In this document: positions 3,093-23,830 of the stretch, in pieces
How the letters are laid out: every line of letters begins with the position of its first letter
Numbering within the stretch: position 1 is the first letter of the stretch
From: Convolutriloba macropyga
Lineage: Eukaryota
Assembly: GCF_964194025.1 (NCBI RefSeq)
Contig: NW_027452515.1
Span: 1 to 64,000, forward strand
Reading direction: 5' to 3'
DNA length: 64,000 nucleotides
Made by a program: the position numbers and the translations under genes
Notes under the pieces: model-generated
Database searches by the model: none
Told to the model about the DNA's origin: nothing
What the model saw: the letters and a program-made list of their open reading frames with translations, nothing else

Positions 3093-4516
3093 AAAGGACC
3101 GTCAAAATGAAGGAAAAATAGTACAATAAAAAATGATGAACAACTTAACTGAAGAGCACAACGGTGATCTTTAAGTTTTTTTATTCGAGACGATTGTAAC
3201 CCAAGCTTTTGCATTATTATGCTCAAGTTTTCCTTTTTTAAAACCTTAAAAAAACAATTTGTAAAAGGTGCATCTTTCACTTTCTACAAAGATCTCGAAT
3301 AATCAAACAACTAGAAACTTTTAATCATCAAAATTTTTCAAAAAATTATTGAACGCTAAATTACCATATTTTATTAAAATTAAATTAAAAAAAAACGTTA
3401 TACAATATAATGCCCCTGCATATAAATGGAAAATTGTCATTGAGAACATATATGATAGTAGGTGACAGTTTAGACAGCATAGAGTCGACTTTTTGCAAAT
3501 GGTTACGACAAGGCAAACAAGCCTTAATACATACCCTGGAATGCAAAACATCTTTATGATGTTTTTTATGGTCCTTTTTTTATAAAACCGGCTGAGTTAT
3601 ACATAATACACATCTATTTGTTTACACAGACGTATGCAGACTATAACTCTCTTCACAGATTATTCTGGGGTACACAGATTATTCCCATCAGCCACTTGGT
3701 TTGATTGAATTTGACAACCCTCTCAGTTAAATGCGGATCATTGCCTTGTCAGAAATCTAAATATTAATACGATCAGGGTTAGAGAAAAGCTATAGCAGTT
3801 TACAGACTATTATGGTTGAAAGATTTTTTGAAAATTTTACAGGATTATCTACCAAATCTAAGACGAGAATCTACCAAATCTGAGATTTTTATTGTACGAA
3901 TTTGTGATCAGGCATTTTTTTTCAAATAGAATGATTATGTTGCAAAGTTCTTTCGCATTGGCCTGCTGTCCTTAACGTTGTGTTTTGATCGTTTTCTTGA
4001 AGACTTAAACAAATCGGACAAATATCTTGCAAAACTTATGCAGTTCAGAAATATATCTAGCCAAGTATTTTTTGCACATCTCTTATTTTGTCAGATTTTT
4101 GTTGCAATCTTACCGTTATCTTGGTTGACTCTTTCAAATAGGATGGTTTGTAATCAAAACCAAATTTTAAGCCTTAAAATTTCAAAGATATGTAACATAG
4201 CGTTTTTACGGTACTCTTACATAATTAGGCGTTCATTTTAGCATTGATCCAACAGAGCTTAACGCTTCATAGCTTCGTTTTAGCTCCACATCTGGTTTAA
4301 AAAGATCTAAGTTTTTAAAATATGGCGTAATGGTACTACTTGACTCGAGTAAGTTTTTACTTTCAACAGTTTCAACGCGTTCACCCAAAAACTATGTCTC
4401 TGGCATCTCAGAAAAACTTACACGTGTCACTGTTTCCCGCGTCACAAGCTGAAGATTTTTATAGTTAGGTAAAAATGAAAGGACACCCAATTGATATACA
4501 ATTGCGTAAATGAACC

Positions 4517-4691
4517 GGATCTTTTCTGTTTTGCCCCCCCCAGTGTTTTTTATGACCCCCAGTTACAATTTCTATGTTGTTATATAGCAAGTTACTATGT
4601 AAGAAAATAGCACGTGCGCCTGGGGTTCATAAAAAATATATGCTCACTAAGCTGGGGGGGGGGGGGGGGGGGGGTGCAAAACAATAGATCC
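4517..4691 (+). mobile_element. MITE family A, copy 2
   Basis: ggatct...agatcc terminal inverted repeats plus an internal inverted pair ttttatgacccccag / ctggggttcataaaa; homologous to 31767-31953. Confidence 0.75.
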
Positions 4692-4874
4692 AATGAGGTT
4701 ACTGAATGCTGCGTAAAAGATTAATATCTGATTAGCATTTAATTTTACATATGGTCATGGGAATCCTTGGCATCTTAAGTATGTAATAATGATTTAGCAA
4801 AAGCAAATTTTAGACTAAATGGACGCTTTTGCGGCGCAGAAAACAATGAAACTTAATGATCTAACTGTTCTTAG

Positions 4875-5490
4875 AAGAAGTTTGCAGCAAGTTTATTTGT
4901 CCTGTTGTCCTTTTTAAGAAATATTTCTTCTAACCAATTTTTCTTCAACATTTGGATAAACAGGTAAAGTTTGGAGGGCATTAGCTTGCTGAGCAGCTCT
5001 TTTAGAGCATTACTACTTACCAGTCTCTAAGTATATGATTCGGTGGCGGTCAAGCAAGCCGATAGGCAAGCAAGCCGAATTTTGAAAATGAGGTCAAGTA
5101 AGCCGAAAAATTTTCGGATACCCGTATTTTAAGTTGCCCCTGGCGGTCTGGTGGGCGCGCTTCGCACGCGTCGCGGCTTTGCCGCGATAACCGGCCCGCT
5201 ATTTCCGGATTACATCCCACAGCAGCTGAGAGGCATGGCCATGGACAGCGGTCTGCTGAGGCCCGTACCCACTAGATGTCTAAAAATTGACGCATTTTTG
5301 TTTCTTTGGTGCATTGGAATACATTATGCACTATAATACTACTCGCAGTATTGATTGTAACAGCTAACAATGTATTATTTCTGATGGATTACATAAGTAT
5401 TACATGACTTTCGGCTTGCTTTTCTGTCGGCTTGCTTGCCTATCGGCTTACTTTGCACTCGCCATATGATTCACAAAATTTTTTTCAGGA
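4875..5490 (+). repeat. Dispersed ~200-bp repeat family B (related copies ~26578-26770, ~32740-32895, ~34275-34410, ~36800-36910); this copy is interrupted by a MITE
   Basis: Shared motifs aagttt(g/t)(c/t)agcaa...gtcctgt...gataaacaggta...gcatta...gctgagcag in each copy. Confidence 0.6.
5041..5463. mobile_element. Non-autonomous DNA transposon (MITE) with perfect 8-bp TSD ATATGATT
   Basis: atatgatt at 5033-5040 and 5464-5471; TIRs built of aagcaagccgataggcaagcaagccga and its reverse complement; 8-bp TSDs are typical of hAT and Merlin. Confidence 0.8.
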
Positions 5491-5978
5491 GATATAAATT
5501 CATGTTAAGATGAGGGATTCTGAATCTCCGCTCTCAACTCCTGCTCCACTCAACGGCACTCTCCCACCCGCCCTTCTCCCCTTGCCCCTTGTCACTCCCC
5601 CCCCCCCACTCAACTCCCCTTCCCATGATATCATCCCTAAGCGCCAACTGGCTACCAAAGAAGCCGATCACTCGCCGGTCATTTGAGAGCCGTTCACCCG
5701 ATGTTAATCGGTTATGTTTCTTATTTTATTTGAAAGATCTTTTTTTGCGGAAAATGAGAAACATGCGCGGAAAACTCTAACTATTGAACGATTTACTACC
5801 ACTTATCCTACATTTGTCTGCAATAATTCCTCGGCCCAGTTTTTAAAATTCTTGCAAACTTGACTGCACTTTTGAGAGATTGGACAAGATGCTTTGTATT
5901 TTTTGCAAAGATCTTTGTAAGATCTTAGAGGATAGTTTTCAGTGTATGACTATTAGGATATGATTAATTCTGCTCCAG

Positions 5979-6136
5979 TGGCTCAACTGTCACTGAGACT
6001 ACAAAAGTGGGTGTGGGTTTGAATGACTTGTGTATGGGTGAGGTATATCAGCTGCAGTTCACTCGATTTCTGGCTGGACAGCAGAGTGACAATATCCCAA
6101 CAAGCTACTTCTTCTGCGCACCTTCCGATAAACCTG
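5979..6136 (+). CDS. Exon of FN3-like host gene (GSTVTETTKVGVGLNDLCMGEVYQLQFTRFLAGQQSDNIPTSYFFCAPSDKP; phase 2 to 1)
   Basis: ttctgctccag acceptor, g|gttaca donor, open frame; L-x-D-L-x-x-G-x-x-Y resembles the FN3 E-F strand tyrosine-corner motif. Confidence 0.6.
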
Positions 6137-6338
6137 GTTACAGAAATGAGCTGAATTGCTCTGAACTTTTAAAGGAAATTTGTTGAAAGTGCATTTAGCA
6201 AAAATTGGGTTTTTGTTTTAAAATTTTGCATGCTTCCGAGAAAAAATAGCCCGCCATTAACTTGTGATCGTTATTTGGGATGTGCGTGTGGGGGGGGGGG
6301 CAAAGATCAAGCAGGATTAACTCCGATGAAGATTTCAG

Positions 6339-6506
6339 GTCAATTGCCATATGGGAAGTTAGAGTTCATCACAGCAGGAACAGATCGGTGTGATGTGGTC
6401 ACTTTGTTTGTATCGCGAGGAAGTTTGATGTTCCTCGAAAATGAGAAGTTGGATTACTCTCTGAGTTGTGCTCATTGCGGAACAGCAGAAACAAAGCATG
6501 TCACAA
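6339..6506 (+). CDS. Exon of FN3-like host gene (GQLPYGKLEFITAGTDRCDVVTLFVSRGSLMFLENEKLDYSLSCAHCGTAETKHVT; phase 1 to 1)
   Basis: atttcag acceptor, a|gtgatt donor; lies in ORF 6230-6544; phase compatible with both flanking exons. Confidence 0.55.
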
Positions 6507-7759
6507 GTGATTATTTTGCTCTCTCTATCCCAAAAGGCTCTTGAGTTTTTCATAGTTCATGAAAGAGTATTTGAAGGAGTAATACTTGATAGATATTAAG
6601 TTAATATTATTCATAGCCGCCGTCAACCTCTCAAAAGCTATTATTTAGGCACCCTCCTTTTTTAAAAAATAATCCAACGGGTTCGGATGTTATTGGTGCG
6701 CTGTTTTTTTGATAGCCGCGAATAGCTGGGGTTATTATTGGCCTTGTCTTGTTTTTTTTGCAGTTCAAAGAATTTGAACTGTATTATGGGGCGCTGTCTT
6801 TGTACGACTCGAAAAACAAGTGTTTAGGTCAAATGGCCGAATGAATTAAAGAGCCGCAAGAATAGAGTGATTTTCTGTTCACGAGAAAATTAGGTGTGAA
6901 AAAATTTTCGAAACATTTTGATCACGTGCGGCTTTTTCGAAGAAGTTTTTTAGTTTTTAATTAAAATTTTCGGGCGATATGAAATTCTAAACCCTAATAA
7001 CAAGTATCTGTACGTTTTTGACCACTTCAATCTTTTATTAAAGTTTTAAACTCAATACTGAGATATTTTTGAGACGCTTCCATAGCGGTTCTTAGACTCT
7101 ATTTTTTGTTTTTTTTTGTCGAGAGTTATTGTTTTGGTTTGTATGTTGAGTTGTGTGACTGTTTGGTTTCGTTAAAATTAATTTTAGTTTGTTTTAATTA
7201 TGGAAAATGGGCTAAGTTTAAACATTTTTGTTTCCTCAATTCTCTGTTCATTCTTCTTTTCTCAGAATTTGCTATTTTAAGTCTTTTAATTAGAGGTTTT
7301 GTTATTTGTATTGTCACTTAATCAGTACAATAAAAGATTTGAGAGCACACATTATCACAAATCAAATTATTCAACTAGGCAGTTTTTGGCAGTTTTGCCC
7401 TCTTTGTCATGTTTTACGAGTTTTCCAACGCATTTGGCTGTCATCTGGATGCTCAATGATTCAACAGTAGATTTTTGCAAAGATGTGTTTTGAACAGTTG
7501 TTAGGAAAATACAGTTCTTGGAGAAAAATAAAATAACGATTTTTAAAATATTTTTCTCTAATTCTTTTCACTTTGCTCGCTTTTTCACTTTATTTGACAC
7601 GTCTTGCTTTTTTTTAATTTTCCCATCACTTGACGAGCACAATAAATAATACCTGAGAATTTGTGATTTACAATAGTGTCGGCTAGGATGGAAGTTAAAT
7701 TTTACTTCGTTTCAATTTCGGAGTCTCCTCGCTGCTTTTTTTTAAATATCTGTTCATAC

Positions 7760-8060
7760 ACTTTGACAATTTTTGAAGTCAATTTGGTGTAGAGCAAAAA
7801 GCGAGTGGTTTTGCGGTGTATGAAAAACAATTCGTTTTTTCGCTATTGGTTTTGTGTTCAACTTCGGCATATTGACATTGATTTTCACTGTTTTTCCTTT
7901 TTTGTGGATAGGATTTTTTCTAAATGTTTTTTTTCTGATCCACCAATGGTTCATTCTGGGTCTAATTTTTCTGTTTAGTCTTTGAAAATTTTTTAAATTG
8001 TGCATCAATTCTTGTCCTACTATGTTTTTTATTTCGTTGTCAATATTTTTGTTACGTCCA
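7760..8060 (+). repeat. Dispersed old repeat family C (related copies ~34835-35285, ~35815-36110)
   Basis: Collinear shared blocks gtggttttgcggtgt, acattgatttt, ggattttttctaaatgtttt, cttgtc..ctatgtt..tttatttcgt. Confidence 0.55.
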
Positions 8061-9147
8061 TGACATCACAATTACTTCAAATCTGCTTTTGTTCATTCGT
8101 TCAAGCAATTTCAACTGAATGGCGTGCTTGACGTCACTTTTCAACCTTATTGGAGAGCATTTTCTGTTCATCTGCGTGAGCGCTACCACTATTCGTACCA
8201 GAGCAGTTCTTCCGACTTTAGTCGGCTTTGTTTATTTTATTTATTCACAACTGAGCCCCGGCCCAATGATCTAGTCGCAAAATTTACTAGATGTACTTTT
8301 ATACTCTCTAACCTATCTCAGATGATACCATGCTAAAAATAGAAAGGCGTTCTGCTCTGTTAATATGAAAATTACATTGATTAAAATAACGGGTACTTGT
8401 CACATTGCGATTTTATCTTGATACTGGCTATTTTCGAGAGCGTTTCATTCATTAATAACAACATTAATAAATTGTATTCAAGTAAGTTGACATTGCTGTA
8501 TAAATCAAGCTGTAGAAGCCACTTACTCGATAGATCACCAAAAGATCCAATGGTCCTAGTCAGGTGATGCCGGTAGCAGTACTAAGAAACTTTACAAAAA
8601 GGAAGATGCTCAAGGTGCAGGGGATTAAAAAAAACGGTCAGCTTAATACATTGACTAAACTAATTGTTCGTTTTTGCTAATGTAGTTTTCTCTAAAACTA
8701 TATTGATAATGTTTCAACTCGTTTTTACTCAAAATTTGTACTTCTCATATAGAGGGGGTAAAATGTCCAGATAAAGTTCAACATTTTTCTTATTCTTACT
8801 CCTAGTCGTTTAGGGCTACATCCACTAACAATGTTGGTGCTTTTCATCCGCCGGTTTTGTTTTTTTTTCGGCGTTTTTTAATCAGAATTGATCATTCCTT
8901 AATCGATTTTAGAGGTTGAAGATTTCAAAGTTTGATGAAAGGTCAACTATATCGAGCTTTTATATCAATGATCTGTGGTTTCCAAAATTTTTCAACAAAA
9001 GGGTATCGTCTTTTATAACGATATTTAAAGACATGAGCTCTGACTTATCTACTAGACAAAACATTTATTCGGGGAGGGAGGGGGATTGTTAGAAGAGATG
9101 GAAAATTCCGTAAATGATTTTTTAGTAGTATTCATTGATTATTTTAG

Positions 9148-9198
9148 TAACAACAGAGGACAGCAATAAAGAACAACTGGCTCTGGTGAAAGACCTAT
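9148..9198 (+). CDS. 51-bp exon of FN3-like host gene (ITTEDSNKEQLALVKDL; phase 1 to 1)
   Basis: attattttag acceptor, t|gtaagt donor, open frame in the expected phase. Confidence 0.6.
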
Positions 9199-9939
9199 GT
9201 AAGTCGTTACTCAACGTAATTTGTGGTTAGAAGCAGCCTTCAGCCGAAAGAAAAAAAAATTATCATTGTTCTTTAAGTCGCTAGCACCAAATTTTTGTTA
9301 TGACAGATTGATAAATAAACTATAGCTTCAAATTAGCTGTCAAAACCAGCTTAGTATAGTCTGTCCTATATAGTCGAAACAAATCATTTGAAAAACGCTA
9401 AAGCATGCAATTGAGTAGGCAAATGAGCAATGTTTGAAATGTCGATTAGGTCAACTTATAAGAAATGTTTTTTGAAATTTGTGGGCAACGCTATGCATAA
9501 AAATAGAAAAACTGGCAATTCTTCAGTAATAACAGCACCAAAAAATAATAACCACAGGAACACTACGCTGCTCTCAAATGTTGATACAATATCATATAAT
9601 ATGATAAGTTAATAACATATCATTACAAACAAAAGGAACCTAATTAAAGCATGCATATATCAGCATTTTGTTGTTCATTTGCATGTCTAGAGTTTTTGAA
9701 TGTTCGCTTAAGTTGTGATTTTATGAGATTACCTATTTAAATGGTCCAATAAATTTTCAACGCGAGCGAACTTTCGAAAACCGCCAGACAGGCACTTTAA
9801 CAGTAAAAATACCGATATCTGAATGTTTATATATAAATTTTGACCTTTGAAACAATAGGCTGTTGAATAGTACGCTTGTGAGAAATTCTCGCTTTGTCTG
9901 TGCAGTGAGAAAGAATGAGTCGCTTCTCTAAGTAGGTGG

Positions 9940-10020
9940 AAAAAAATTTACTCTCTAATCTGGGATCAAACCCATCCTAGAATGAGGTGCGGGAACCAAG
10001 CCAGCTCTGACCAGGCCACC
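9940..10020 (-). mobile_element. Possible tRNA-derived SINE head remnant
   Basis: Minus strand reads ggtggcctggtcag (A-box-like) ... gggtttgatccc (B-box-like) followed by a T run; does not fold as an intact tRNA. Confidence 0.3.
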
Positions 10021-10128
10021 TAGGGTCGCGCACGGGGGGGGGGGGGGTTCCCATCCAGGGGTCCCATCCTGATCAAGGCCCCATCCAGAGTCTGCGCGGT
10101 CTGATCTGCTCACTACCTAACGTCTGGA

Positions 10129-10281
10129 AGTATACACCACCTGACATCATTTTGACACAAAAGTTTTGGTGCTCGACATGCTTAATATTAAATTGTTTCC
10201 TTTAACACCAGGAAACAATTTAAGATTAAGCAAGTCGAGCACTCAAATTTTGTGTCAAAAAGATGTCAGGTGGTGTATGCT
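10129..10281. mobile_element. Fold-back palindromic MITE-like element (~70-bp arms)
   Basis: atacaccacctgacatc...ttaaattgtttcct pairs with aggaaacaatttaa...gatgtcaggtggtgtat around a short loop, with few mismatches. Confidence 0.7.
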
Positions 10282-11701
10282 CGACTTGCTTAAGTCAATC
10301 CATAATGTGAAGAAGTGCTCCACGAATAACTGAAATGGTCAACAGGGCTCTTCTTGTAGCAGATGTAGCAAAAAAGCAAATGTCCTTCCCGAAGCAAACA
10401 TGATTCAAGTGGAAAATATACTCACCTTTCTATTGGTTTTTAGTTAAACCGAATGCAACTGAATAGGCTTATTAGTGCATTTTAACATAATAGAGAAACT
10501 AGAGGTGACACCAGCCAATATCTGAACTCAAACATTTACTGCTAAATTGCATTTTGTGAAAAAATTGATTTTCATGAAAAATTTTTCTAACAAAGATGTG
10601 TATATTATAGCGGACATTTTCTGTCGTTTTCAGGACAAAAAAGTACAAAATAATAATCATATTTGTTGACAAGTCTCAGTGTCTTATAATTTCATTGATC
10701 AGCGTTGATTCTATCTGTATAGTGGTAGCAAGAGCAGTCATATTTGTGTTATATTTGCCCTTCAATTGAATAGTCTCTTTTTCCTTGGCTGTTTTTCTTA
10801 CTTAGAAAACAGGTTCAGCAAGCTCTCTGACTTTTTTAATCTGAGGAACAAATTTAGAGTGTTTCAAAACTTCAAATTATACTATTTTTCGTCAAATTTG
10901 CTCTCTTTTTTAACAATCTATGTATAAAATTTTATTTTTGCAGACGCTTTAATAAAAAAACAGTTATACAGAGAACAGTAATCAGGAATTCTCATTTTTA
11001 ATTTCTCATTTTCTTAAAATTTTATCTGAATCTAATACACCTGCTACGATGATGTAGTTAGGGTAAAATTTTTGCAGTTTTTCGAATCTCCATTTTATTA
11101 ATGACCCTTCCAACCTGTGTGCTATTTGTAGAATTTTTTGAGCTTTTTCGTTGCGTTTTTTAGTCATTGCTATGAAACGAGCTTGAATCATTTTTTGTAC
11201 TTAGCGTTTGTTTTTATTTTTGAATAATTGCTTTGGCTTTTTGAGTGACTTTAACGTCCATGAATCTTAAAAAGTTTTGTAGTCTAAGTTGAACTCAATA
11301 GTCAAACAGTTTACTAAGTGAGCTAAATCTGTTCTAATTTTTTTTTTCATTTTTTTTCATTTTATCACTTCAACTCTTTATAATTTATACAATCTCTAAT
11401 GAGATTATTTTGAGAAGGCCCTCGCTGGAATCATTTAGAGAACGCTTGCCTTGGACAAGGACTTCATTTCTTGGCTATCGTATTCTAGATGCTCTTTCTT
11501 TTAAGCTTTTCATGAGGTCACTACATTAATTTTGGTCGTATTGTTATTCTTCAAAATTTTGGTTGTTTCTAGATTTCTTGTTGCATTGACACAGAAAATT
11601 TTTTATTGAAAGATCACTCATAACTTCATCATGATTAAAAAATTACTGCTTCTGGTCAAGACAGGAAACAAAACAATTATAGCATCTAAGAATTGGGACG
11701 T

Positions 11702-12135
11702 TGTTAGTAACTAAATAGATGTAAGCGAGAGTTTATTAGCCAATCAGAATCGAGTATTTAAATAAGCACTCGATTTGAATAAAATAAGTTCCAAATTACG
11801 TATAATGTTCGGAAAAAGTTCGTGTAACCTAATTTTAAGTAAACATAACTACGATATGTACGGATTAAGGTGGTTTTCGGCTTAATATTTTTAGGTTCTT
11901 TAGACGGTTGTTGATCGATTAGGAACGATTCTGAGGTCAATAATATCAGACAAAAAACCAGTAAAAGAGCATCAAAAAAACCTTGCCGTCTAAACTCTCA
12001 CTTGTTGCTATCAGCAAAACTAATACGTTGTCTGGATTTACTTTGTCGTTGTAACACGTTGTTTCTATGTACGCACTAAAGCTTATACACGTTTGAATAA
12101 TTTGAAACTTCGAAAGTATGATTTTGTCAGCTTTA
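11702..12135 (+). repeat. 5' LTR of BEL element 1 (434 bp), with CCAAT box agccaatcag and TATA-like motif
   Basis: Direct repeat of 21524-21958 with ~13 substitutions and 1 indel by eye; starts TG. Confidence 0.93.
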
Positions 12136-12138
12136 TAT

Positions 12139-12146
12139 TGGTGCCG
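12139..12146 (+). promoter_or_regulatory. Primer-binding site TGGTGCCG (tRNA-His/Phe-type 3' end)
   Basis: 3 nt after the 5' LTR; complementary to ...CGGCACCA; only 8 nt match, so the tRNA identity is uncertain. Confidence 0.6.
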
Positions 12147-12735
12147 CTACGGTATCCAGGGAAAAAGTTTTTCCAACTAATTTAGATGCTCTGTTAACTA
12201 GATGCTCCGTTAACCAGATGCTCTGGGATAATCAACCCAGCACAATTCCCGGCAGTTAATTACTTTTAATTTATTTATACGCACTACTTACTCCGCAGTC
12301 GAATGATTTAACTGATTTCTACCTTCAGTTGATTTATACTGAAACAAGTCCAACAAAATACTGTATATATGGACGTCGACATACCTCAGTGGAGCAATGG
12401 ACTTCAACGAGGGAAAACCAATCTGACAAATTACAACGAAGGCGGACTTGAACAAATGAGGCCCAGTCAGATTAACTGTTGGGCACTGATGCAAAAATAA
12501 AGTTCAAAACGGGTGAGAAGCAGTGCGTTCATCTAGTTGAAGTCTCATAAATGCTCACTACACAGAGTTAGAGTTGAGAAAATACCAGAAACTGTAAGAC
12601 AGAACAGAACTTTTACACATTTTTTGCAGTAAATTAAAATTTTCAATTTAGACGGAAACTCCAACCCCTAATTTTTCTAACTCTTCAATCAAATATATTG
12701 GGTTATCAAAAAAATTAACGGTATCAGATCAAAAA

Positions 12736-12922
12736 TTAAGAACTCCGTGATTTTCAAAACGGAAAATTTAAAATAAGAATTCCGTGATTTTCAACACGGA
12801 AATCTTAAATTAAGAATTCCGGGATTTTCAACACGGAAATCTTAAGAATTCCGTGATTTTCAACACGGAAATCTTAAATTAGGAATTCGGCGATTTTCAA
12901 CATCGAAATCTTAAGAATTCCG
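12736..12922 (+). repeat. Tandem array of ~5.5 hairpin units (32-37 bp) in the BEL 1 leader
   Basis: Unit aagaattccgtg-attttcaa-cacggaaatctt(aaatt): 12-bp stem with 1 mismatch and an 8-nt loop. Confidence 0.9.
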
Positions 12923-13545
12923 CTATTTAGATAATCGGTCACCATCAAACCCCACATATCAAATTTTTTTTGACGAAAAAACATCGATTTTGAAAAATTT
13001 TTGGTTGAATTTTATAAAATTTTTGGTCAATTTTGAGGCAAATCAAAAAAATTTAGAAAATCAATACCGAATATTGATAAATCGTACTTTCATATATAAA
13101 ACCGTTCAGTTTACTACATTACCGTTCCGTAAAGAAGAATTTGCAAAAAAAAAATTGACCAAAAATTTCCAAAATTGGACAAAAGCATAAAATTTTGACA
13201 AATTTCGTCAAAATTATTATTTTCAATCGAAGGTTCGTTAATTTATTGAAACTCAATAAAAAAGGTGTGAAATATTTACCAACCTCCGGCATACAAAAAA
13301 TTTGCATTGCCATATTTTCCTCGTTCTCGATTCGATATCGTACCGCCCGCGTATTTTTCGTTCTTTGACATTTCAATTCTCCACGTTCCGTTTTTTTTTC
13401 AATACCACCGCTCTCCCAAAATTTTCGTTTTCTCTGTCTACTTTTTCCAATTTCGATGTAGTATGTTGTCATATAGGATGAAGCATGTTGTGTTTTGTTG
13501 CAGTATGTTGATTAGGCTAGTATGCTGGTTTGGTCTTATTGCTTT

Positions 13546-14065
13546 CTAGGGTGTGACTTAAGTTTGTTCTGGAGTTACGGCTAGTTGGTTTCTGGACTTT
13601 TCCCAATACTAATTTACTAGCGCCCCTGTTGTAGTATTTTGATATTACCACCGTATGTTTGCGTGTAACTGTATGATTGTCAGTTGGTTTGGGTTTTGCC
13701 TTCCAGGGTGTGACTTAAGTTTATTCTGGAGTTACGGCTAGATTGTTTTCTTCACTTTTCCAGCTTTCATAGACTACAAAAACACATATTGTTTAACTTT
13801 TGCTGCAGTTTGTTTAATATTCTTGGTATGCTGATTGGTTGTTTAGTTTTGAATACTGCTAGGGTGCGACTTAAGTTTATTCTGGAGTTACGGCTAGTAA
13901 ATTTCTTGCTCTTTTCATCCGCTTAGTATACTACTGCCTTGCCGTAATTTAGTTTGTTATTTGTATATATTAAGCCCCTAATGACCTGTGCTAGTTTGTT
14001 TATTGCAGTAGCATCTCTCCTCCTTCCTAGGGTGTGACTTAGGTTTGTTCTGGAGTTACGGCTAG
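13546..14065 (+). repeat. Array of four conserved 39-bp repeats separated by 117-129-bp diverged spacers in the BEL 1 leader
   Basis: ctagggtgtgacttaagtttgttctggagttacggctag at 13546-13584, 13703-13741, 13859-13897 and 14027-14065; each differs from this sequence at 0-2 positions. Confidence 0.92.
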
Positions 14066-14109
14066 ATTGTTTGGCTGAGTTTGTTGCTGTGGTATGCTAG
14101 CATAGTACT

Positions 14110-14420
14110 TACCGACCTCCCCGCTCGCTGCTTAATCGTCTCCCGCCCGTTCTTTCCCGTCTTTCCGTTTCGTTGCGCGCTACTCGCTCAACGCTTCGGT
14201 TCTAACCGTCCGTTTTCCCGTCGCGTCGTGAGCCCGTCTCCCAACATTTCCATCCCGTCCGTCACGTTTTCCGTTTCTTCGTGTTTCGCTCGTTCCTCGT
14301 TTCCGTCCCGTCCGTTGCGTCGCCAGTTTCCTACCCGCGTTTTGCCCGTTCCGTTCTGTTTCCCGTTTCGTGGCGCTTTATCCACCCGGCCATCTTTCGC
14401 GGGTCGCCTGTTTTTCTGTT
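14110..14420 (+). repeat. A-poor, CpG-rich low-complexity tract of (c)cgtt motifs in the BEL 1 leader
   Basis: Repeated ccgtt / ttcgt / cccgt motifs with very few A residues. Confidence 0.75.
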
Positions 14421-14624
14421 GAGTCTCACGTTGCGTAAAAGCAGGTTAGACGCTCTATGAATTTTGTTACTTACTTTCGCTGAGTAATTTATTACTCGGT
14501 AACTTCTTTACTGCTCTTCGGCGGCTTGAATATCAGGTCGTTGTCAATTGGGTTCGGTATAACCCTATTCCCGTGTGATTGTTTGGAACTTATCTTAATT
14601 TGAGAAATCAGCCATTTTAAGATC

Positions 14625-17600
14625 ATGGCCGATCATCAAGAGAAATTGAAAAAGTTCTTTAATGCAAGATCTAATCTAGGGTCTGAGATATGCAACATCC
14701 ATTAGGACATCACAGATGCCATAGGTTGTCAGGACAGGAGGGTTAAAGTTGAACGATTGGTTTCTAAGTTGAAGGACGTTTTCAGTAAACTTGTGCAGAA
14801 GAATGAGGAACTATTTGACTTGTCCAGTAAAGCGGAGAACCCAGATTAAATTTAACCTGTCTTTGAGCAATGGTTGGATGATGTAATTAAGAACAATGAT
14901 AAATTCTTTCTCGCGGCTAGAAGCTATATTCACACAGTTGCTGACCGAGACACCGTATGTGAGGGCATTAATCCTCAATGGCAGTCTAAGAGAAGTTCAC
15001 GCCGAACAACATTATCAATGTCTAGCCAGCGTAAACATGACTTTCTCATGGCAAAACTGAAACACGAAGAGGCTGAAAAACAAGGACACGCTGCTACGCG
15101 CCTTGCTAAGCGGAAATTCGAAATTGCTATGACAAAAAAGGAGCTTGAAATACAAATGGAGCAGATGGCACTTCAAGAATTAGAGGAAGACCACCGCCAG
15201 CGGGCTGCCGCAGCTAAATTAGATGAGGCCGAATCAATAGATAATTGTTCGTTGTTTAGACACCACTCAAGTGATCTGAATTTGCTTAAAGATCGGGGAT
15301 CAGATGGAAGTCAGGGTTTTGTTCAGGATTAGGTAAATTCTTTTCCAGCAGGTAATTCATGACTGATGCAAGTGAGTTAAACTTTTCTTGTCCTGGTTCA
15401 ACAACCGCTGACTCTCCTGTTAAAGATACTGCCCCTAGTAATCCTCCAGAAGACACAAGTAATGTTGCCGATAACTTAAATCATCCTGAAATGCTTTCTC
15501 AGTACACGCGGCCAGCAAGAAGCGTTGTATCGGGAATATCTCCAGGCTCAACTGCAGCAATCAATCAGTGATCAAAGGGTCAAGCAGGCACACAGTCCCT
15601 CAGGAAGTGGTAAGGTGAACCCAGTGATCCAAGTACCAGTCGAAGTACAAAATGTCGCAATCTCACCACTTCAGCCACCTATGCAACCTCCCCGACACCT
15701 GTTATGGCAACCACGAACTCCATTTTTGTACCTGATTTTTCAACAAACCCACAGGTAAACCAGTTCTTGGGTTTGAAAAGCTCCAGTGTGCCTGGTCAAT
15801 TACAAATGTCGATGCCTCATGTTCCGCAGCTACTGAAACCATCTCAAAGTAACATTCCACACCAAACACAAGTCCCTAATGCTCGTTCTCCGCATAATGT
15901 CTCTCCTCCTCTGAACCTACTCGTGAACCCGCCATCCGTAATCCCGCCTCAAGAATTATTTAATCTCAGCCTCCCGTGATTCCCTCGCCCATTCCAGCGA
16001 GCACAGCAATTTACTTACCCGTTCCCAACATTCCACAACAGAACATTGTCCATTCAACTCAAGCCCGCCTGGTGCCAAGGCCTACCGCACCCAAACGTCC
16101 CCTTAACCGTAACCCCGATTTAAACTTGTGGCGTTTTCCTCACAATACTCCCCCAAATGTAAACCAGGCGAAAAATAATGCAACTGTCTTCAACAACTCA
16201 ACAACGTTCAACCGAACCTACCCCCAAGCACAGCTAACCCCGTCATCAGCCATCCCATCTTGCAATTGAATGTACAACACAATCCTAATAGCAACTACGC
16301 AGCAAACTGTGGCATCCCCGTTAACCCCTTTAGTACAACTACTAACATCGCGCCACGTTTTGTCACGCCGGTTAAAAATCCAACGTACGGGCATACTCCT
16401 CCGATACCATTGTGCTGGGGTGGCCCACCGCATCCATTGCCTCCAGCGCCAGCATCTGAAAATGCAAGCTTGATTAAGGCATTCACTAACGCCTTAACTA
16501 GCAAAAGGAATGAACCGCTACCCAAATGGAAGTTGTCCGAATACAACGGGGATCCTCTACAGTGGCACGAATGGTATGGTCAATTTAAAAGCGCAATTGA
16601 CTCTCAGTCCCTAACTGATAATGTGAAATTGACATACCTTAAGACCCTCGTAACTGGTAAAGCTAAAACAGCTATAGCTGAGTTCGCTTACTGCGGCGCA
16701 ATGTATAAAGACGCACTGAGGACCTTAGAACGTAAATTTGGCCAAACAAATTGAAGAACGTAAACAGGCGGTCGTAACTGCCCATTTGGACAAACTCAGC
16801 AGCTTTCCACCATTGAAGATGCACAATAGCGACAACATCATTAACTATTCAGGGTGCATTTCATGTCTTGCCGGGGAATTTAAATCGCTCTCAAATGATT
16901 CAGATTTAAAGAGTGCTGCGCTTCTAAACACTGCCGTACAGAAGCTTCCACCCAATATAAAGGAATCGTGGTCACTTTTCACGGTCAAAAAGCATTGGGT
17001 GAAACCTACTCTTCTGGATTTCATTGACTGGTTAAAGGAGAAGGCTGAAACGCACAATTTAATGAAGAATATCGCAACTAAAACAAGGAATGAGGATACC
17101 ACCAACCCAGTAACAAAGTCAAAAGTTGCATCAAAGGCATTTGCTGCAAATACGCAACACAAGAGTAACCTTAAACCACAACAGAGTTCTCCGTCAACAT
17201 CAATTTTTAGTTGCATTGTATGCCGAGGGAGCCATCGGCCATGGGAATGCCGTGTCTTTAAGGAAAATAGCCCCACGCAGAGAGCCAAGGTCGTGGCTGA
17301 AGCAAAGCCCTGTTTTTCTTGTTTGCGTGATAAATACATGTTTAGGCGATGCCCAAGTCCCCGTAAGTGTAGAAAAGATGGTTGCAACAGCTCCCATAAC
17401 ACCTTACTTCACGGAGCTGAAATGGTGTTTCCAGCTAAACCCTCTAAAAATAACAAACAACATCGATACTTCGAAGTCGAAAACAAGTACTAGTAGGCCA
17501 TCTACCGGTCAACAGCAACCAAGCAAAACAACTACTTTGTCTTCTGTGACCGATGTCAAAGGCCTCCTTCAGAACACGGAACTGAAACTTACTATCTCTT

Positions 17601-20600
17601 CTGGTACTAGTACTACGGCCTTGGTTTTATGCGATACCGCTTGCAGTAACTCTTGGGTTTCCTATAGTCTCGCAGCTAAACTCGGTTTGCAGGGTACCAC
17701 ATTAAAGCTGAACGTCAACGTTATAAACACAGAAGAACTCATCGACACAAAGTGTGTTCAATTGACTGTGACACCTCATAAAAATCAAGACTTCGAAGCA
17801 TTCACTGTGCCTCCCTATGTGAAGGAAACATCAAATGTAGGATCCGACATCATTGACGTTAAGTCCATGCAGGAAACTTACCCACATCTGGCCGTCCTAA
17901 TTACACTAAAGTATAGCTATGGGAACATTGAGAGGATAATTGGACAGGATGTCTACCATGCCATCCGCCCCTTAGAGTACTTTGCAGCCATCGAAAAGTG
18001 TTCACCGTTCGCTGTTCGCTTGCCCAGAGGTTGGGTTTTAAGCGGCCCACTTCCGTCAAGTTCACGTTTAGTCTCAACGTGTTTCAAAGCCAATTTCGGA
18101 CAGAATTATGAATTAGCTTGTAAGGTTAAGTCTTGGTATGAAATGGAATCGTACGGCGCGTACAAGCAGGTTGACCCACGATCCGCAGCGGATGCTCGCG
18201 CGCAGGATATACATGAAACAACAACTTTTCATAACGGCCAAAAATACGATGTCGGTATGCTATGGGCTGATGACAACATCCAGCTCCCGAATAACTACTA
18301 TTCGTCACTGGTACAGCTCAAGTCTCTCAAAAAGCGGCTCTCAAGAGATAAAACATTGAAAGAAAATTACGCTAAGACTATCAGTGAAGACCTGGAAAAA
18401 GGTTACGTAATTCCAATTCCCGATGCTCACATGATCGAACAGCGGTCGGATAAAGAGTGGTACCTACCACATCATCCCGTAATCAACCCGAACAAACCGG
18501 AGAAAGTGCGTAGGGTACTAAATGGTGCAGCAAAGTTCCACGGTAGTTCTTTGAACAAATCCTTGCTCACTGGCCCCGACCTGCTACAAAACCTAATCCA
18601 TGTGCTACTTAGGTTCCGTCAACATCAATTCGCCGTGTCCGCAGATATTGAGGGCATGTTCCTCCAAGTGGGTGTCCCTGACTGTGACAAGCCATCAATG
18701 CGTTTTTTGCGGCGGGAGGACCCCACAACAAATGTTGTTGTGTATCAATACACGCGCCATATATTCGGGCCTAAAGACTCGCCCACATTCGCTAACTATG
18801 CATTACAACGCACGGCCCGAGACAATGTTAGTCGGTACACTGAAACAACCAAAACCGTCCCAGAAAAATTCTACGTGGACAATTACTTGGATTCGGTGCA
18901 GTCGCCTGAGAGGGCTCTCAAAGGTCGAAGGAGTTGGTGCATCTTCTTCATCTAGGTGGGTTCAAGCCTACCAAGTTTGTAAACAATGTACCAAATCTGG
19001 CTGATCGAATTGATGGGCCAACTCAGTCTACCGAACCAAAAGTAATTGTCTCATCTAAGGAGGATTCTTCGCACGTGCTCGAGTTGAAATGGGATCACAA
19101 CAATGATACTCTATTTGTGAGTCCGAGTACCTCCAGTACAGTAACTAAGTCTTTAACACAACGCTTGGTTTTGAGCTTAGTGTCTAAGGTATTCGATCCC
19201 ATCGGCCTAGTGGCACCATTTACTGTTGGTGCCCGATTGTTACTAAGGGACATCTGGCGTGTCAGCGGGCAGCACTGCTATGAATAATACCAAACGACAC
19301 TGTTGAAAAGTTCCTCGAATGGAGTGTAGAACTACCCAAGCTTGACGAAATCACTATAACAAGGAGCTACTTTTCCGGAAACTTTGAATACCTGGAACTA
19401 CACATGTTTGGCGATAGTTCTAAAGAGGTCTTGTTCGCTGTCTCATTTCTCCGAGCTCGAGTAAACACTTGTAGTGGGCCAAAAACAGAGCTTGCATTTG
19501 TCCTGGGTAAAGCTCGCGTAGCACCTATGAAGGTGATGACAATTCCAAAGCTAGAGCTGCAAGCTGCCCTACTGGCCTCTCGGTTGAAGCAAGACGTCTG
19601 TCGAGCCTTTACTGTGCATGTTATCAAAGTTCTTATGTGGACCGATAGCACCAATGTCTTGCAGTGGCTGAACTCCACAAGCAAGCAGCCAATATTTGTT
19701 GCAAACCGTGTATGCGAGATTTTAGAACACACTAGCGTTGATGAATGGAACCACGTTGCCTCGAGCGATAATCCGGCAGATGCCGGTACTCCTGGTATGT
19801 CCGCTGAGGTTTTGCAATCAAGTAGCTGGGTGAGGGGTCCAGATTTCTTAAGAACCTAATGAATTCCCGTTCGAACCAAGCACCGAAGTAGTTAAAAACA
19901 TCAAACTTGGTATAGTAACTAAGGAAACTGACGAAACCAATACATCATTGGCCGCATCCGTAAACAAGTCAACTAAGGATCCGCCCCCGCAACTAATTCA
20001 CTTCGATAAGTACAGTTCTTATCAGAAGTTGCTACGGAAAACAGCATACGCACTCCGCTTGTTACCTTCTCACGGATGTTACCGTAATGCCGATGTTAGC
20101 ATCATAGACACCACGGAGCTTGACGAAGCCGGGCGTCATCTCCAGCATCTTGTCCAAGGAGATTCATTCAATGCAGAGAGAAAAGATCTCCTCGAAAACA
20201 AACCCGTTAAACGGAGTAGCCGTATTGCTCCCTTTTTCCCCTTTATTGGGCCAAATCGTCTCATCCGATCGGCCGGCCGCATTAAACGGTTGGTCGAAGT
20301 TGACTTTGATGTAAAACATCCTATCGTTCACGATGCACGCCATGAATTTGTAAAGTTGTTCCTTAGGCACAACCACGTTAAACATCATAATCAAGGTATT
20401 GACTACCTGCGGGCTAAAGTACAAGAACACTATGTCATCCTCGAATTACGATCCTCACAGCGTTCCATTAAATCCAACTGCGTCACGTGCAGAAACTTCC
20501 GAGCTGCCACTATTCAAACAATCATGACTGACCTGCCAGCAGAAAGACTCGCATACCAGTCTCCTCCATTCATGAACAACGGGGTCGACTATTTCGGCCC

Positions 20601-21523
20601 GTTTTACGTTACTGTACGTTGGACTACCGAGAAGAATTGGGGTTTCTTCTCCACATGCTTAACTACTCTTGCCGTTCATGTTGAAAACGTTCCGTCCATG
20701 GACGCGAGTTCTTGTGTAATGAGGATGGAGCGGTTCCTCTCCCGTTGGGGTACACCTGCCTTTATTTGGTCAGTAAATGGCACTAACTTTGTTGTCGCGG
20801 AAAAAGAACTACGCGAGAATATCGAAAAGTGGAATATCATCAACATCGCCGTCGAACTTACCCACAAAGGCATTAAGTGGAGGTTCAATCCGCCAAGTGC
20901 GCCACACCAAGGTGGCATCTGGGAGAAGTTGGTACGTAGTTTTAAGCGAATACTCTACACCATCCTCGGTACTCGTCGTCTCATGGACGTTTTGAACACT
21001 ACTTTTTGGATCGTCGAACAGGCACTTAACGCACGCCCGTTAACGCCCTTAAACGCCGACCCGTCCGACCTAGGCGCAATAACACCTAATAATTTCCTAC
21101 TCGGTAACCAAGCAACAGCAATTCCGTCAATCTTTGGCGTAGACGAGTTCAATCATCGTAAACGGTACGCCCGCGCACAGTCGTATGCTAACTTTATTTG
21201 GTCACGATTTGGATCAAAGAGTACGTACTATTTGGATCAAAGGGCCCGGTCACTATTTGGATCAAAGAGTACGTACCGGCGCTGAACCGACGTTCCAAGT
21301 GGTAGACGCCTGCCGAGCAACACCTTAAGACCGGTGATTTGGTTTGGGTAGTTGAAGATACCAACCCAAGGGGTTAATACCCCACTGCTCGGATCACTGA
21401 ACTCCGTTACGGTTCCGACAGCGTCCCGCGCTCCGCCGTCCTGCGCACTTCTACCGGATCGCTCGTCCGCCCACTTGTAAAATTAGTACCCATTCTACCA
21501 GAATCTTCTTCTGGGCCGGAGGA
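14625..21523 (+). pseudogene. BEL/Pao gag-pol polyprotein, broken by stops and frameshifts
   Basis: Gag DUF1759-like LSEYNGDPLQWHEWYGQFKSAID; Cys/His knuckles CIVCRGSH, CFSC, CRKDGCNSSHNTLLH; protease LCDTACS; RT WYLPHHPV, ADIEGMF, FYVDN; Pao RNase H FGDSS, IPKLELQAA, NPADAGT; integrase GVDYFGP, PHQGGIWE. Confidence 0.95.
21513..21523 (+). promoter_or_regulatory. Polypurine tract of BEL 1
   Basis: gggccggagga immediately before the 3' LTR TG. Confidence 0.7.
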
Positions 21524-21958
21524 TGTTAGTAACTAAATAGATTTAAGCGAGAGATTATTAGCCAATCAGAATCGAGTATTTATATAAGCAATCGAATTGA
21601 ACAAAATACGTTCCAAATTACGTATAATGTTCGGAAAAAGTTCGTGTAACCTAATTTTAAGTAAACATAACCACGATATGTACGGATTTAGGTGGTTTTC
21701 GGCTTAATAGTTTTAGGTTCTTTAGACGATTGTTGATCGATTGGGAACCGATTCTGAGGTCAATAATATCAGACAAAAAACCAGTAAAAGAGCATCAAAA
21801 AAACCTTGCCGTCTAAACTCTCACTTGTTGCTATCAGCAAAACTAATACGTTGTCTGGATTTACTTTGTCGTTGTAACACGTTGTTTCTATGTACGCACT
21901 AAAGCTTATACACGTTTGAATAATTTGAAACTTCGAAAGTCTGATTTTGTCAGCTTTA
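21524..21958 (+). repeat. 3' LTR of BEL element 1 (435 bp)
   Basis: Direct repeat of 11702-12135. Confidence 0.93.
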
Positions 21959-22750
21959 GACGCTTTGCATAGTATTGTGACAAAATTGTAAACAAGAACT
22001 GTTAAAAAGCTCTGACTTAAGCACAAATCATAGAAAGTCTAATAATTTGTATTTAATAGCATAATAAGCCATTCGCAGTTTAAATTGCGGATTAAGACGG
22101 CAAATAGCAAATTTAGCATTTGTCGATCAAGTTTCTCTCGAGAAAATGTGTTTTCTAAAAATGGAGCTTAAGTAGATTACAAAAAAGTTCCAGAAATCAG
22201 TTTCAAGCGTAATGGAGCTGTTATCGCTATTGTCCCCAAAAGCCGCAAAGTGTAGGTTTTGCGGCGCATAATTCAGAATGCGTCGAATTTTAAAGTGCAT
22301 GTTTTCAGATATGCCTGGTGAGTTGTTGTCTGCCGAATTGACAAGAACGTGTAAATCGCGATATGACGTCATGAAAAAGTAAGTCAAGGTTGAGATTTCT
22401 CTTCAAAACGAAGCGTTTAGTAAACTCAAATTACTACAAAGATTTGGTGATTGTTGGTACTTAAGCTCCATTTTGTTTTGTAGTTTCTAATCAACAACGA
22501 TGCCCAATGAAACAACTACTCAATTTGTTTTCTCTCACCGTAACATGAAAATTAAAATTAATCAAATCACGGGAAGGAAATAGTCTCTTCATCAGTTAAC
22601 AATTTACTTGGTATTTATCCTTTTTTCTATGAACCCGGGTTGTTCATCATAAAACTTTCCTTGATTTCATTCAAGGTCATATATGATCCCGGTAATCATA
22701 CAAGGTCATATATGATTTGTTTGATTTCCCGGTAATCATAAAAGTTTCAG

Positions 22751-22974
22751 ACAAAAAAAAATACAGTAGTTGTATACAACTCCAATTGTAGCAGCTACAA
22801 CGCTCAATCAGTGGAAAATACACCAGAGTCACCCAAACAATGATTTCTAGAGTTTCATTTCTTCCGGTAATCATACAAGGTCGGGACGGGATATCAAACA
22901 ACATTTCGGTTAAGTGAATCAAAAGTTTATGGAATTGAGTCAAAGGATTTCAACTCGGTCTTTATGAAAATTAG
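22751..22974 (+). pseudogene. Disabled exon of FN3-like host gene (YKKKYSSCIQLQL*QLQRSISGKYTRVTQTMISRVSFLPVIIQGR/TGYQTTFRLSESKVYGIESKDFNSVFMKI)
   Basis: tttcag acceptor in phase 1 (fits exon 9148) and ag|gtaagt donor in phase 2 (fits exon 23103); in-frame TAG at 22789-22791 and an extra G at ~22883 that the duplicate at 24763 lacks. Confidence 0.5.
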
Positions 22975-23102
22975 GTAAGTGTCAAATAAAGAACATCCAT
23001 ACACTGAATAAATATCTTTATTTGAATAGCCGCCGTCAGCCTGCCTCTCAACCGCAATTATTTTAGTCGTCATTTTTCTACTTGCTTTCTAATCATTTTC
23101 AG

Positions 23103-23194
23103 GAAAGACCCAAAAACTTTTCCACCGGATGCAGCTCTGCTGAACATTCCGGACACCAATTTCGTGATGAAGATTCAATCAAAGTACAGATTGA
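23103..23194 (+). CDS. Exon (RKDPKTFPPDAALLNIPDTNFVMKIQSKYRL; phase 2 to 1)
   Basis: cattttcag acceptor, a|gtaagt donor, open frame. Confidence 0.65.
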
Positions 23195-23270
23195 GTAAGT
23201 TCCGATCATTTCAAACTGAATCGTGATCAAATGAATGAAATGAATCAAAACTATGTGTACTATATTTCAG

Positions 23271-23293
23271 TTTTACCCGAAATGAATCTTACG
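23271..23293 (+). CDS. 23-bp micro-exon (ILPEMNLT; phase 1 to 0)
   Basis: atatttcag acceptor, g|gtaagt donor; flanking introns 76 and 51 bp. Confidence 0.65.
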
Positions 23294-23344
23294 GTAAGTT
23301 TCTCTGTTTAAGAAAGTTGTTGTTCACCCTTTTACTTTATACAG

Positions 23345-23373
23345 AAGCAAAGAGACCCTCCCTACGCTAATAG
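23345..23373 (+). CDS. 29-bp micro-exon (KQRDPPYAN+ag; phase 0 to 2)
   Basis: ctttatacag acceptor, ag|gtgagt donor, in frame. Confidence 0.65.
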
Positions 23374-23472
23374 GTGAGTCTGACGAAGTCACTGAGAAAA
23401 GATGTCATTTACCGTGCCCGAATTCATACGTTTTAGACTTTTAGCAATGCAATTTGTTTTTTTTTCCATTAG

Positions 23473-23533
23473 AAGCTGCAAGAATGAAACCTGGAACACT
23501 TACAAGTTCCCTAGTCTAGATCTCGACTTATGA
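23473..23533 (+). CDS. Probable next exon (RSCKNETWNTYKFPSLDLDL*), 3' end uncertain
   Basis: tttttccattag acceptor in phase 2; creates N-glycosylation sequons NRS and NET; runs into a repeat tract and a stop with no clear donor. Confidence 0.4.
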
Positions 23534-23534
23534 A

Positions 23535-23830
23535 AAAACCATGCTCGGCCAAAAAGGGTATGATTAGACCATGCTGGACCCAAAAGAGCTATGAAAAGAA
23601 CTTTGCTAGACATAATTTATCACTTGGACTTTTGCTCGACCCAAATTTTGTCACTCTGGACGTTGCTCGAACCAAAAACTTTCGGCAGGGTTTTGTTCGA
23701 AGTAGGTTTTGACACTCTGGACATTTGCTCGACCCAAATTTAAGCTTGAGTTTTGTCTGACCAAACATGGGTTCTGGACTTTTCCTCGCGACCAAAATTT
23801 TCGAAGGGTAAAAATTGAGGAGCAAAAGTC
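23535..23830 (+). repeat. Degenerate ~29-bp tandem repeat (ttgctcgacccaaattt core)
   Basis: About 9 periodic gctcgaccc / gaccaaa motifs. Confidence 0.6.

Follow-up and report, generated by a model that had tools for sequence, protein, structure and literature searches.

Four near-identical 39-nt modules in the untranslated leader of a BEL/Pao LTR retrotransposon are, in the reading that we favour (with a probability of about 40%), cis-acting stem-loops of the sense RNA, most likely multivalent Gag/NC sites for packaging, a role proposed by analogy with known packaging signals. Comparisons among element copies show that purifying selection in replicating lineages keeps the 39-nt module near-invariant, and the module (hereafter the core) very probably works as a signal on the RNA of the element.

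Host element and leader array

The element is 10.3 kb long, lies on the + strand of the window (the whole 64-kb stretch of DNA that was analysed) and is a BEL/Pao LTR retrotransposon, with LTRs, target duplication, primer binding site (PBS) and gag-pol domains all in place. Its two LTRs differ at 14 of 435 positions (3.2%, i.e. 96.8% identical; the earlier note on this DNA had put the difference at ∼3%), and a target duplication of 4-5 bp, GACG(T/C), is found outside both. The gag-pol content comprises a coiled-coil Gag N-terminus, DUF1759, CCHC knuckles, a protease, Peptidase_A17 and pol; PF03564 and PF05380 are matched in the window copy as well as in intact copies, and related elements contain RVT_1, rve and DUF5641. 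All ORFs of at least 120 aa within 4000-24000 are the element's own, and those that were run against Pfam gave gag-pol domains or no match. In more intact genomic copies gag opens with a 415-aa coiled-coil ORF (MAEQQEKLKK...), and homology to one such ORF (L032:3804-5051) places the gag ATG of the window copy at 14625. The parts of the element, all on the + strand, are as follows.

11702..12135, + strand: 5' LTR, which begins with TG (435 aligned positions against the 3' LTR)
12136..14624, + strand: untranslated leader, 2489 nt, with the gag start placed by homology
12139..12156, + strand: putative primer binding site TGGTGCCGCTACGG... (TGGTGCC..., TGG-initiated), 3 nt past the 5' LTR, read directly
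13428..14065, + strand: array of four ∼157-bp units (each a decayed part plus a core), by alignment an old tandem duplication
13546..13584, + strand: core 1, a predicted 39-nt stem-loop, from direct reading, folding and pattern search
13703..13741, + strand: core 2, with the 5' end CCAG (T>C, private to the window copy)
13859..13897, + strand: core 3 (T9>C, private to the window copy, disrupts one stem pair)
14010..14030, + strand: polypyrimidine tract and CTAG/G adjoining the last core; its C/T richness is common to all families, its sequence is not
14027..14065, + strand: core 4 (A16>G, private to the window copy)
14100..14420, + strand: C/T-rich region of CCGTT type, a degenerate version of the 54-bp tandem repeats of family B (see below)
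14625..21285, + strand: gag-pol region, broken by stops and frameshifts in the window copy
21524..21958, + strand: 3' LTR, aligned with the 5' LTR

The array belongs to the sense genomic RNA, between the PBS (∼12139) and the gag ATG (14625), which agrees with its earlier placement in a BEL/Pao leader; it starts ∼1.4 kb downstream of the PBS and ends 480-560 nt ahead of the gag ATG. There are 21 upstream ATGs in the leader (12136..14624), and in each core all three sense frames are closed by stop codons (direct reading).

The four 39-bp repeats of the earlier note, with their spacing and their four variable positions, were recovered at exactly the same coordinates: the start-to-start distances of the cores in the window are 157, 156 and 168 nt, the spacers measure 118, 117 and 129 nt, and the cores vary at core positions 2, 9, 16 and 21 only. 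CTAG had been said to bound nearly all of the repeats, and it is indeed found at both ends of every core in the window, the 5' end of core 2 (CCAG) being the sole exception. Core 1, too, has a private change of the window copy, a G at core position 26. A search with the pattern GGTGTGACTT-N12-GAGTTACGG (at most two mismatches) gave four matches in the 64-kb window and none in 100 dinucleotide shuffles, and no copy of the motif was found within the window outside the array, the LTR U3 included. Tandem Repeats Finder did not call the array because its units are too diverged.

Tandem origin of the units and the spacers

We refer to the 118 nt upstream of core 1 as S0, and to the spacers between the cores as S1, S2 and S3. 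Among S0, S1 and S2 the pairwise identity is 57-60%, and S1 and S3 are 57% identical (z = 2.7-3.75 for these pairs, relative to shuffles); over the whole set most alignments lie at 55-60%. The earlier description of the spacers as barely alignable is too strong for these pairs; the alignments of S0/S3 and S2/S3 are no better than those of shuffles. The alignment of all four units retains shared remnants across the full unit (e.g. ...TTGTTTTCT..ACTTTTCC... and ...GTATG.TG.TTGGTT...). Since the spacers are mutually alignable and remnants are found along the whole unit, these alignments show that a ∼157-bp unit was long ago multiplied in tandem to four copies, which have decayed unevenly. An evenly decaying tandem repeat, aligning end to end, had been named in advance as the outcome that would speak against a conserved core; the units do align end to end, weakly outside the core, but their decay is uneven and has spared the core.

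Collecting other genomic copies, as had been proposed, revealed a constant array: repeat number holds at four and spacer content is unchanged over 29 copies, which have the same spacers in the same order. Four cores are seen in 28 of these 29 copies, spaced 160/158/169 nt; in copy L008 an ungapped scan missed the fourth core, yet a separate search found it at the expected place. Four units are also present in family B and in L038, a further family. Rare deletion or duplication joints between cores were observed in DNA unitigs of four public runs; searches for RNA runs brought up nothing but runs that behave as whole-genome DNA. These unitigs have single-copy depth over 12188-12481, and their summed depth is higher over the array than over gag (depth there is no copy number).

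The array resembles CRISPR arrays in look alone, with near-identical repeats of ∼39 nt, hairpin potential and unlike segments of similar length. A CRISPR array was considered and rejected: near-identical direct repeats are present, but the spacers are homologous to each other, are not acquired and are alike in all copies, a prokaryotic host and nearby cas genes are both absent, and the array lies inside a retrotransposon of a 1.18-Gb genome. This upholds the earlier statement that the array is no true CRISPR (the host being eukaryotic, cas genes lacking and the spacers mutually homologous and fixed), and it removes the repeat-spacer analogy on which the earlier description was built, as the spacers are homologous remnants of one duplicated unit and constant among the copies of the family. 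A hypervariable UTR minisatellite was rejected as well: the homologous units are arranged head to tail, but they do not vary freely in number or sequence. A CRISPR-like or processing array, in which the repeats would be cut to free ∼120-nt spacer RNAs or the spacers would have been acquired elsewhere, can be given almost no weight: it has the visual pattern of conserved repeats and unlike spacers of similar length in its favour, nothing more, whereas the homologous spacers keep their order in all 29 copies and drift near-freely between families, cas genes are lacking in this eukaryotic host, no Rfam match lies within the array (E up to 1) and a miRNA precursor would need a longer stem. Of the roles once suggested, processing into ∼120-nt spacer RNAs is unsupported because the spacers evolve almost freely between families, and a nucleosome-spaced array is a weak idea since the spacing spans 138 to 287 nt among families. 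ARAGORN predicted no tRNA in the array. Outside it, at 12773-12889, there are two sub-threshold matches to miRNA models of Rfam.

Conservation and folding of the core

Genome-wide, a 35-mer of the core (at most three mismatches) has 3770 matches and its reversed control none; 35-mers from a spacer of the main subfamily and from RT have 488 and 325 matches, respectively, so the core persists in subfamilies whose spacers have diverged. The comparison of the spacer (488) with RT (325) gives no clear signal as to non-autonomous derivatives that keep the array.

Two sets of copies were compared. Family A consists of the window copy and 28 others. Pairwise column identity in this family is 0.968 in the cores and 0.90 elsewhere, and sites with variants in at least two copies make up 5.8% of the core sites and 22.3% of the others (p = 4e-7); likewise, the window copy differs from the family A majority at 2.6% of core sites and 11.1% of sites elsewhere (p = 4e-4). 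Family B (30 copies from the same genome) was reached via Gag N-terminal homologues, and its Gag N-terminus is 45-46% identical to that of family A. In family B the number of singletons per site per copy is 0.0077 in the cores and 0.0084 elsewhere, and these equal rates indicate that the cores are no mutational cold spot; sites with shared variants amount to 5.8% in the cores and 15% elsewhere (p = 0.0014). A normal rate of private mutations together with a depletion of shared variants identifies the conservation as purifying selection in the replicating lineage.

The same difference is found between the families. The cores of families A and B are 92-94% identical (the cores of the window copy are 89-92% identical to those of family B and of L038), and the commonest core 2 and core 3 of family B are identical to family A cores at 39 out of 39 positions. 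With private decay counted in, core identity between families still ranges from 89 to 94%. The spacers of the two families are 55-58% identical, and where gag is best conserved its fourfold-degenerate sites have an identity of 39%, the level of neutral saturation between families A and B. A 39-mer no better conserved than its flanks across family members, named at the outset as a finding that would count against the idea, is thus not what the families contain.

That the cores are functionless, and alike through gene conversion, concerted evolution or recent duplication, is extremely unlikely. Tandem repeats often homogenise, and the rare copies with fewer or more units (the unitig joints) also speak for this explanation; however, two core-specific differences (G/A at core position 21 and, in core 1, the A at position 26) recur unchanged in copies and subfamilies alike, the cores are conserved between families with saturated neutral sites, the spacers between the same cores are down to 55-60% identity, and the cores gain private mutations at a normal rate. 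Core-specific differences that have been kept since the split of the window copy from the main subfamily make homogenisation unlikely. The earlier proposal of 'selection or homogenisation' acting on the core alone can accordingly be narrowed: selection is borne out by cores far better conserved than their flanks across copies, subfamilies and family B, and homogenisation is not.

An alignment of 58 distinct core sequences has two invariant arms, GGTGTGACTT and GAGTTACGG, and a centre that tolerates substitutions and indels. The predicted fold consists of an outer 4-bp CUAG/CUAG helix, a G-rich internal loop, an 8-bp helix (UGUGACUU/GAGUUACG, which includes three G-U pairs) and a 12-nt U/G-rich loop. 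The minimum free energy (MFE) of a single core is -11.9 kcal/mol on the sense strand (z from -2.3 to -2.8, which is modest) and, for the antisense strand, about -3 kcal/mol (z between about -1 and 0, like shuffles), so the sense-strand hairpin reported earlier was found again, now with some comparative support. Folding of the whole array gave z = -1.8 for the sense strand and +0.7 for the antisense strand, and three of the four units form the hairpin in the MFE structure of a 611-nt context.

Comparative support comes from core 0 of family B, in which both arms are exact and the centre has been rewritten with a 1-nt deletion: its closing stem is UGGC/GUUA in place of CUAG/CUAG, with all four pairs kept, and its MFE structure is exactly the two-helix model. 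In the two-helix structure 96% of the cells are paired and the double-sided changes exceed those of all 500 shuffles, although they represent only two evolutionary events. For the main 8-bp stem (MFE structure), covariation within the clade is not above that of shuffles, because this stem never varies at the lineage level. The covariation check suggested in the earlier note thus came out divided, with a closing stem that covaries in one diverged core and a main stem that is invariant and gives no covariation. We infer that the core acts as an RNA stem-loop on the genomic transcript. The palindrome ACUUAAGU (CUUAAG) is half buried in the predicted stem of canonical cores; in core 0 of family B a GUUAAC lies wholly in the loop, possibly by chance.

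Sister families, candidate roles and known parallels

In a HMMER search with the CA-NC-PR part of Gag, contigs of other public assemblies proved to contain related BEL/Pao elements. In L043 (Gag 48% identical) the leader has three units of ∼195 bp between the 5' LTR and gag, each of which folds to a 29-bp hairpin; seven of the 29 pairs are compensatory, a number matched by none of 500 shuffles. L042 (Gag 52% identical) and L074 (50%) have four smaller hairpins each, just upstream of a gag-like ORF. Over the eight copies in these two elements nine out of 12 pairs are compensatory (0-1 of 500 shuffles match this, and slid controls give 1-3), and the unpaired GUGU and UUGA stretches are constant. 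Their motif has GUGU, GACUU and UCUGG in common with the 39-nt core and the same topology (an outer helix, an internal loop containing GUGU and an inner helix), which makes homology to the core plausible. All these hairpins, in L043, L042 and L074, fold better on the sense strand. Leader hairpins that fold on the sense strand and recur several times, in many cases four times, thus look typical of the clade. In L041 the leader is short and the motif is absent, and L075 was left out of the comparison as too short.

Tandem duplication of an ancestral leader segment of ∼157 nt produced the four units, and most of each unit went on to drift almost freely under purifying selection that held the 39-nt module alone. 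In the mechanism that we propose, the four stem-loops may act jointly as multivalent recognition sites on the full-length RNA; the likeliest partner is the Gag of the same element, through its zinc knuckles (NC), and binding would serve selective packaging and perhaps dimerisation, by analogy with retroviruses. The CA-NC-protease module of Gag, which has CCHC knuckles, is ∼90% identical between families A and B and the N-terminus ∼45%, as would be expected if a ligand and its binding domain were conserved together. More tentatively, the BEL/Pao elements of this clade may in general use a multivalent packaging signal, typically of four stem-loops, that is read by the zinc knuckles of Gag. This extension would have the unpaired GUGU-type motif conserved and the array born of tandem duplication in the leader and kept through sequence turnover; the families of the source genome would have kept it invariant past neutral saturation, and the sister families would have kept their three to four hairpins by compensatory changes.

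The structural and conservation evidence also fits some other role of the RNA, such as an IRES or other translational control, constitutive nuclear export of the unspliced RNA, or RNA localisation via a host protein, which we consider unlikely but worth some weight. The 21 upstream ATGs and the stops in all core frames make cap-dependent scanning look hard, the array ends well ahead of the gag ATG (by the 480-560 nt given above), and precedents exist: the leaders of gypsy and Idefix are reported to have IRES activity, CTEs are more effective as multimers than singly, and I-factor RNA transport in Drosophila oocytes is directed by small stem-loops. However, no finding connects the hairpin with ribosomes, export factors or the transport machinery, four identical small hairpins in freely drifting sequence are unlike known IRES architecture, and the co-conservation with the NC module slightly favours binding by Gag. 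Rather improbable is an action at the level of DNA, with the cores as reiterated sites for a host or element protein in an enhancer, insulator or internal promoter array of the 5' UTR. The full 39-mer is conserved in sequence, beyond what pairing potential asks for, a composite site for a DNA-binding protein would be an equally good reading of an invariant 39-mer whose dyad symmetry is imperfect, and the spacing is flexible, as in enhancers; Drosophila LTR elements do keep enhancers and insulators in their 5' UTRs, parallels being the Su(Hw) cluster of gypsy, the copia leader enhancer and, in mouse, the L1 monomers, and GGTGTGA in the 5' arm resembles what we take to be a T-box half-site (a lead only). 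A DNA site gives no reason, however, why the arms should be complementary through G-U pairs only, which confines folding to the sense strand, nor why the closing stem should be altered on both sides with pairing retained, and compensatory changes as in the hairpins of the sister families are unexpected for sequence-specific DNA recognition; the G-U asymmetry and the compensatory changes together make a DNA-level array less likely. The Su(Hw) core, which we take to be TGCATA/TATGCA, is absent from all cores (direct reading), and within the window the motif is confined to the array, the LTR U3 being free of it.

Splicing would account for some of the same bases: a polypyrimidine tract and CTAG/G before the cores, strongest at the last one, could form a 3' splice site that removes most of the leader. 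In the window three of the four cores do follow a C/T-rich tract with YAG/G, the tract ahead of core 4 stays C/T-rich in all families as its sequence changes, and the AG is retained in the CCAG of unit 2; we nevertheless regard this as very unlikely, as it explains the first few bases of one core and neither 39 invariant bases in each of four cores nor the 3' arm, no donor was identified, and core 0 of family B lacks the AG (TGGC) with both arms kept.

Leader stem-loops that serve as packaging signals are textbook knowledge for retroviruses, where Psi, as far as known, is a compact group of unlike hairpins adjoining the PBS (SL1-SL4 in HIV-1; DIS-1/2 and SL-C/SL-D in MoMLV). The array, as we read it, is like Psi in that its stem-loops are on the sense strand, lie between PBS and gag on the full-length RNA and are more conserved than their surroundings, and in that a candidate partner, the NC part of Gag with its CCHC knuckles, is encoded by the same element (a partner role assigned by analogy). 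In contrast to Psi, the BEL/Pao module is repeated four times near-identically, with ∼120 nt of freely evolving sequence in between, and ∼1.4 kb past the PBS. Another likeness is to the packaging signals of alphaviruses (several stem-loops in nsP1, each with a GGG motif) and of ssRNA phages (dispersed hairpins), in which a small stem-loop that has a conserved unpaired motif recurs several times and the copies are additive sites for the capsid protein; those signals, however, lie in coding sequence and arose by convergence, and the BEL/Pao array arose by tandem duplication in a leader. The gypsy insulator (12 Su(Hw) sites) and the copia enhancer share with it reiterated conserved motifs separated by variable sequence in a 5' UTR, but their motifs are short protein sites on DNA without strand-specific pairing, whereas the BEL/Pao module is 39 nt long, has a predicted sense-only fold and covarying counterparts in sister families, and contains no Su(Hw) motif.

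Tandem arrays in the UTRs of LTR elements are known to be hypervariable in monomer sequence and number and to seed satellites (PMC7004042), the arrays in the 3' UTR of Ogre/Tat elements being an example (Macas 2009, as cited in PMC7004042). The BEL/Pao array is like the latter a non-coding tandem duplication in an LTR element, with rare copies that have gained or lost units, but it is fixed at four units and just 39 nt per unit are conserved across families. Sireviruses have conserved reiterated motifs in non-coding regions, in their LTRs (PMC2829016). These motifs, too, are short, reiterated, non-coding and conserved among very divergent members of a retrotransposon lineage; unlike the BEL/Pao cores, they are found in plants, in the LTR or upstream of env, as palindromic CGG-CCG boxes of CpG islands that are presumed to act as DNA.

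Among the LTR retrotransposons of metazoans, BEL/Pao elements form one of three large groups, and to our knowledge no cis-acting RNA signal has been described for them. Our literature search agrees with this: it revealed no account of a reiterated stem-loop array, frozen by selection, in the leaders of BEL/Pao elements, and a search for the core motif returned an unrelated primer and nothing else. If the packaging reading is right, BEL/Pao elements would have in the array their first defined cis-acting RNA signal, one that parallels, in a retroelement, the multi-hairpin signals by which alphaviruses and RNA phages are packaged. The core is a sharply bounded 39-nt candidate with unusually clean evolutionary constraint, and with it the choice of RNA by BEL/Pao Gag becomes directly testable, using short RNAs and recombinant Gag. 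The array also illustrates how a UTR tandem duplication that is partly frozen by selection takes on a repeat-spacer look, which is not to be taken for CRISPR-like biology.

A minor similarity concerns the C/T-rich region downstream of the array. In L040 (GCA_029980085.1) the 247 nt upstream of gag, at which point the contig ends, are C/T-rich like this region, whose CCGTT is presumably Myb-like.

Modular leader of the window copy

The untranslated leader of this BEL/Pao element, between the 5' LTR and gag, is modular, and the subfamily to which the window copy belongs is rare and differs by about 12% from the main subfamily: four DNA runs cover part of the leader of the window copy (12188-12628) at ∼40x, the depth of single-copy sequence, whereas its LTR and hairpin array are highly repeated in the same runs, and the sequence from the LTR to position 13004 is different in the main subfamily. 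In each stem-loop core of the array (13546-14065), every one of the three sense frames contains a stop codon (TAG, TGA and the final TAG of the core). There are 21 upstream ATGs in the leader, 10 of them within the array, where they come mostly from GTATG motifs that recur in the decayed parts of the repeat units.

Repeat blocks on either side of the array

Two further repeat blocks were observed in the leader, one upstream of the hairpin array and one, C/T-rich with CCGTT/CGCGC motifs, between the array and gag.

Further repeat blocks and similar stretches
Window 12733-12922: 37-nt tandem repeat, five copies, with a TTCCGTG...CACGGAA inverted repeat in every unit
Window 14100-14420, + strand: C/T-rich repeat block
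L034:5515-5790 and L035:5485-5800: C/T-rich repeat block
L040:1-120 (relative from GCA_029980085.1): similar C/T-rich stretch ahead of gag

The segment with the 37-nt repeats is common to only a few other genomic copies (L010 and L025), and an Rfam search of this segment returned only sub-threshold matches, to miRNA models. In family B, the second family of the same genome, the C/T-rich block consists of 54-bp tandem units (five to six clear ones), of which the block in the window copy is a degenerate version.

Rearranged copies and sister elements

L039 and L036 are degenerate copies of further subfamilies, in which cores have been lost by deletions ending near cores (one core remains in L039 and two in L036); these deletions agree with rare deletion joints in the DNA unitigs (13565>13807, 13574>14044, 13585>14023 and 13742>14014). 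At another locus of the source genome (G000:C4:8476762-8480533; L011 and L017), two arrays are 2961 bp apart with one LTR between them. Since the order of elements is LTR-leader-LTR-leader-gag, this locus holds a derivative, either tandem or with an internal deletion, made of LTR and leader alone.

Among sister elements from other assemblies, L042 has an unannotated ORF of 225 aa (L042:5761-6438) between its 5' LTR and hairpin array, and in L043 the leader begins with seven 26-bp tandem repeats (L043:5863-6107).
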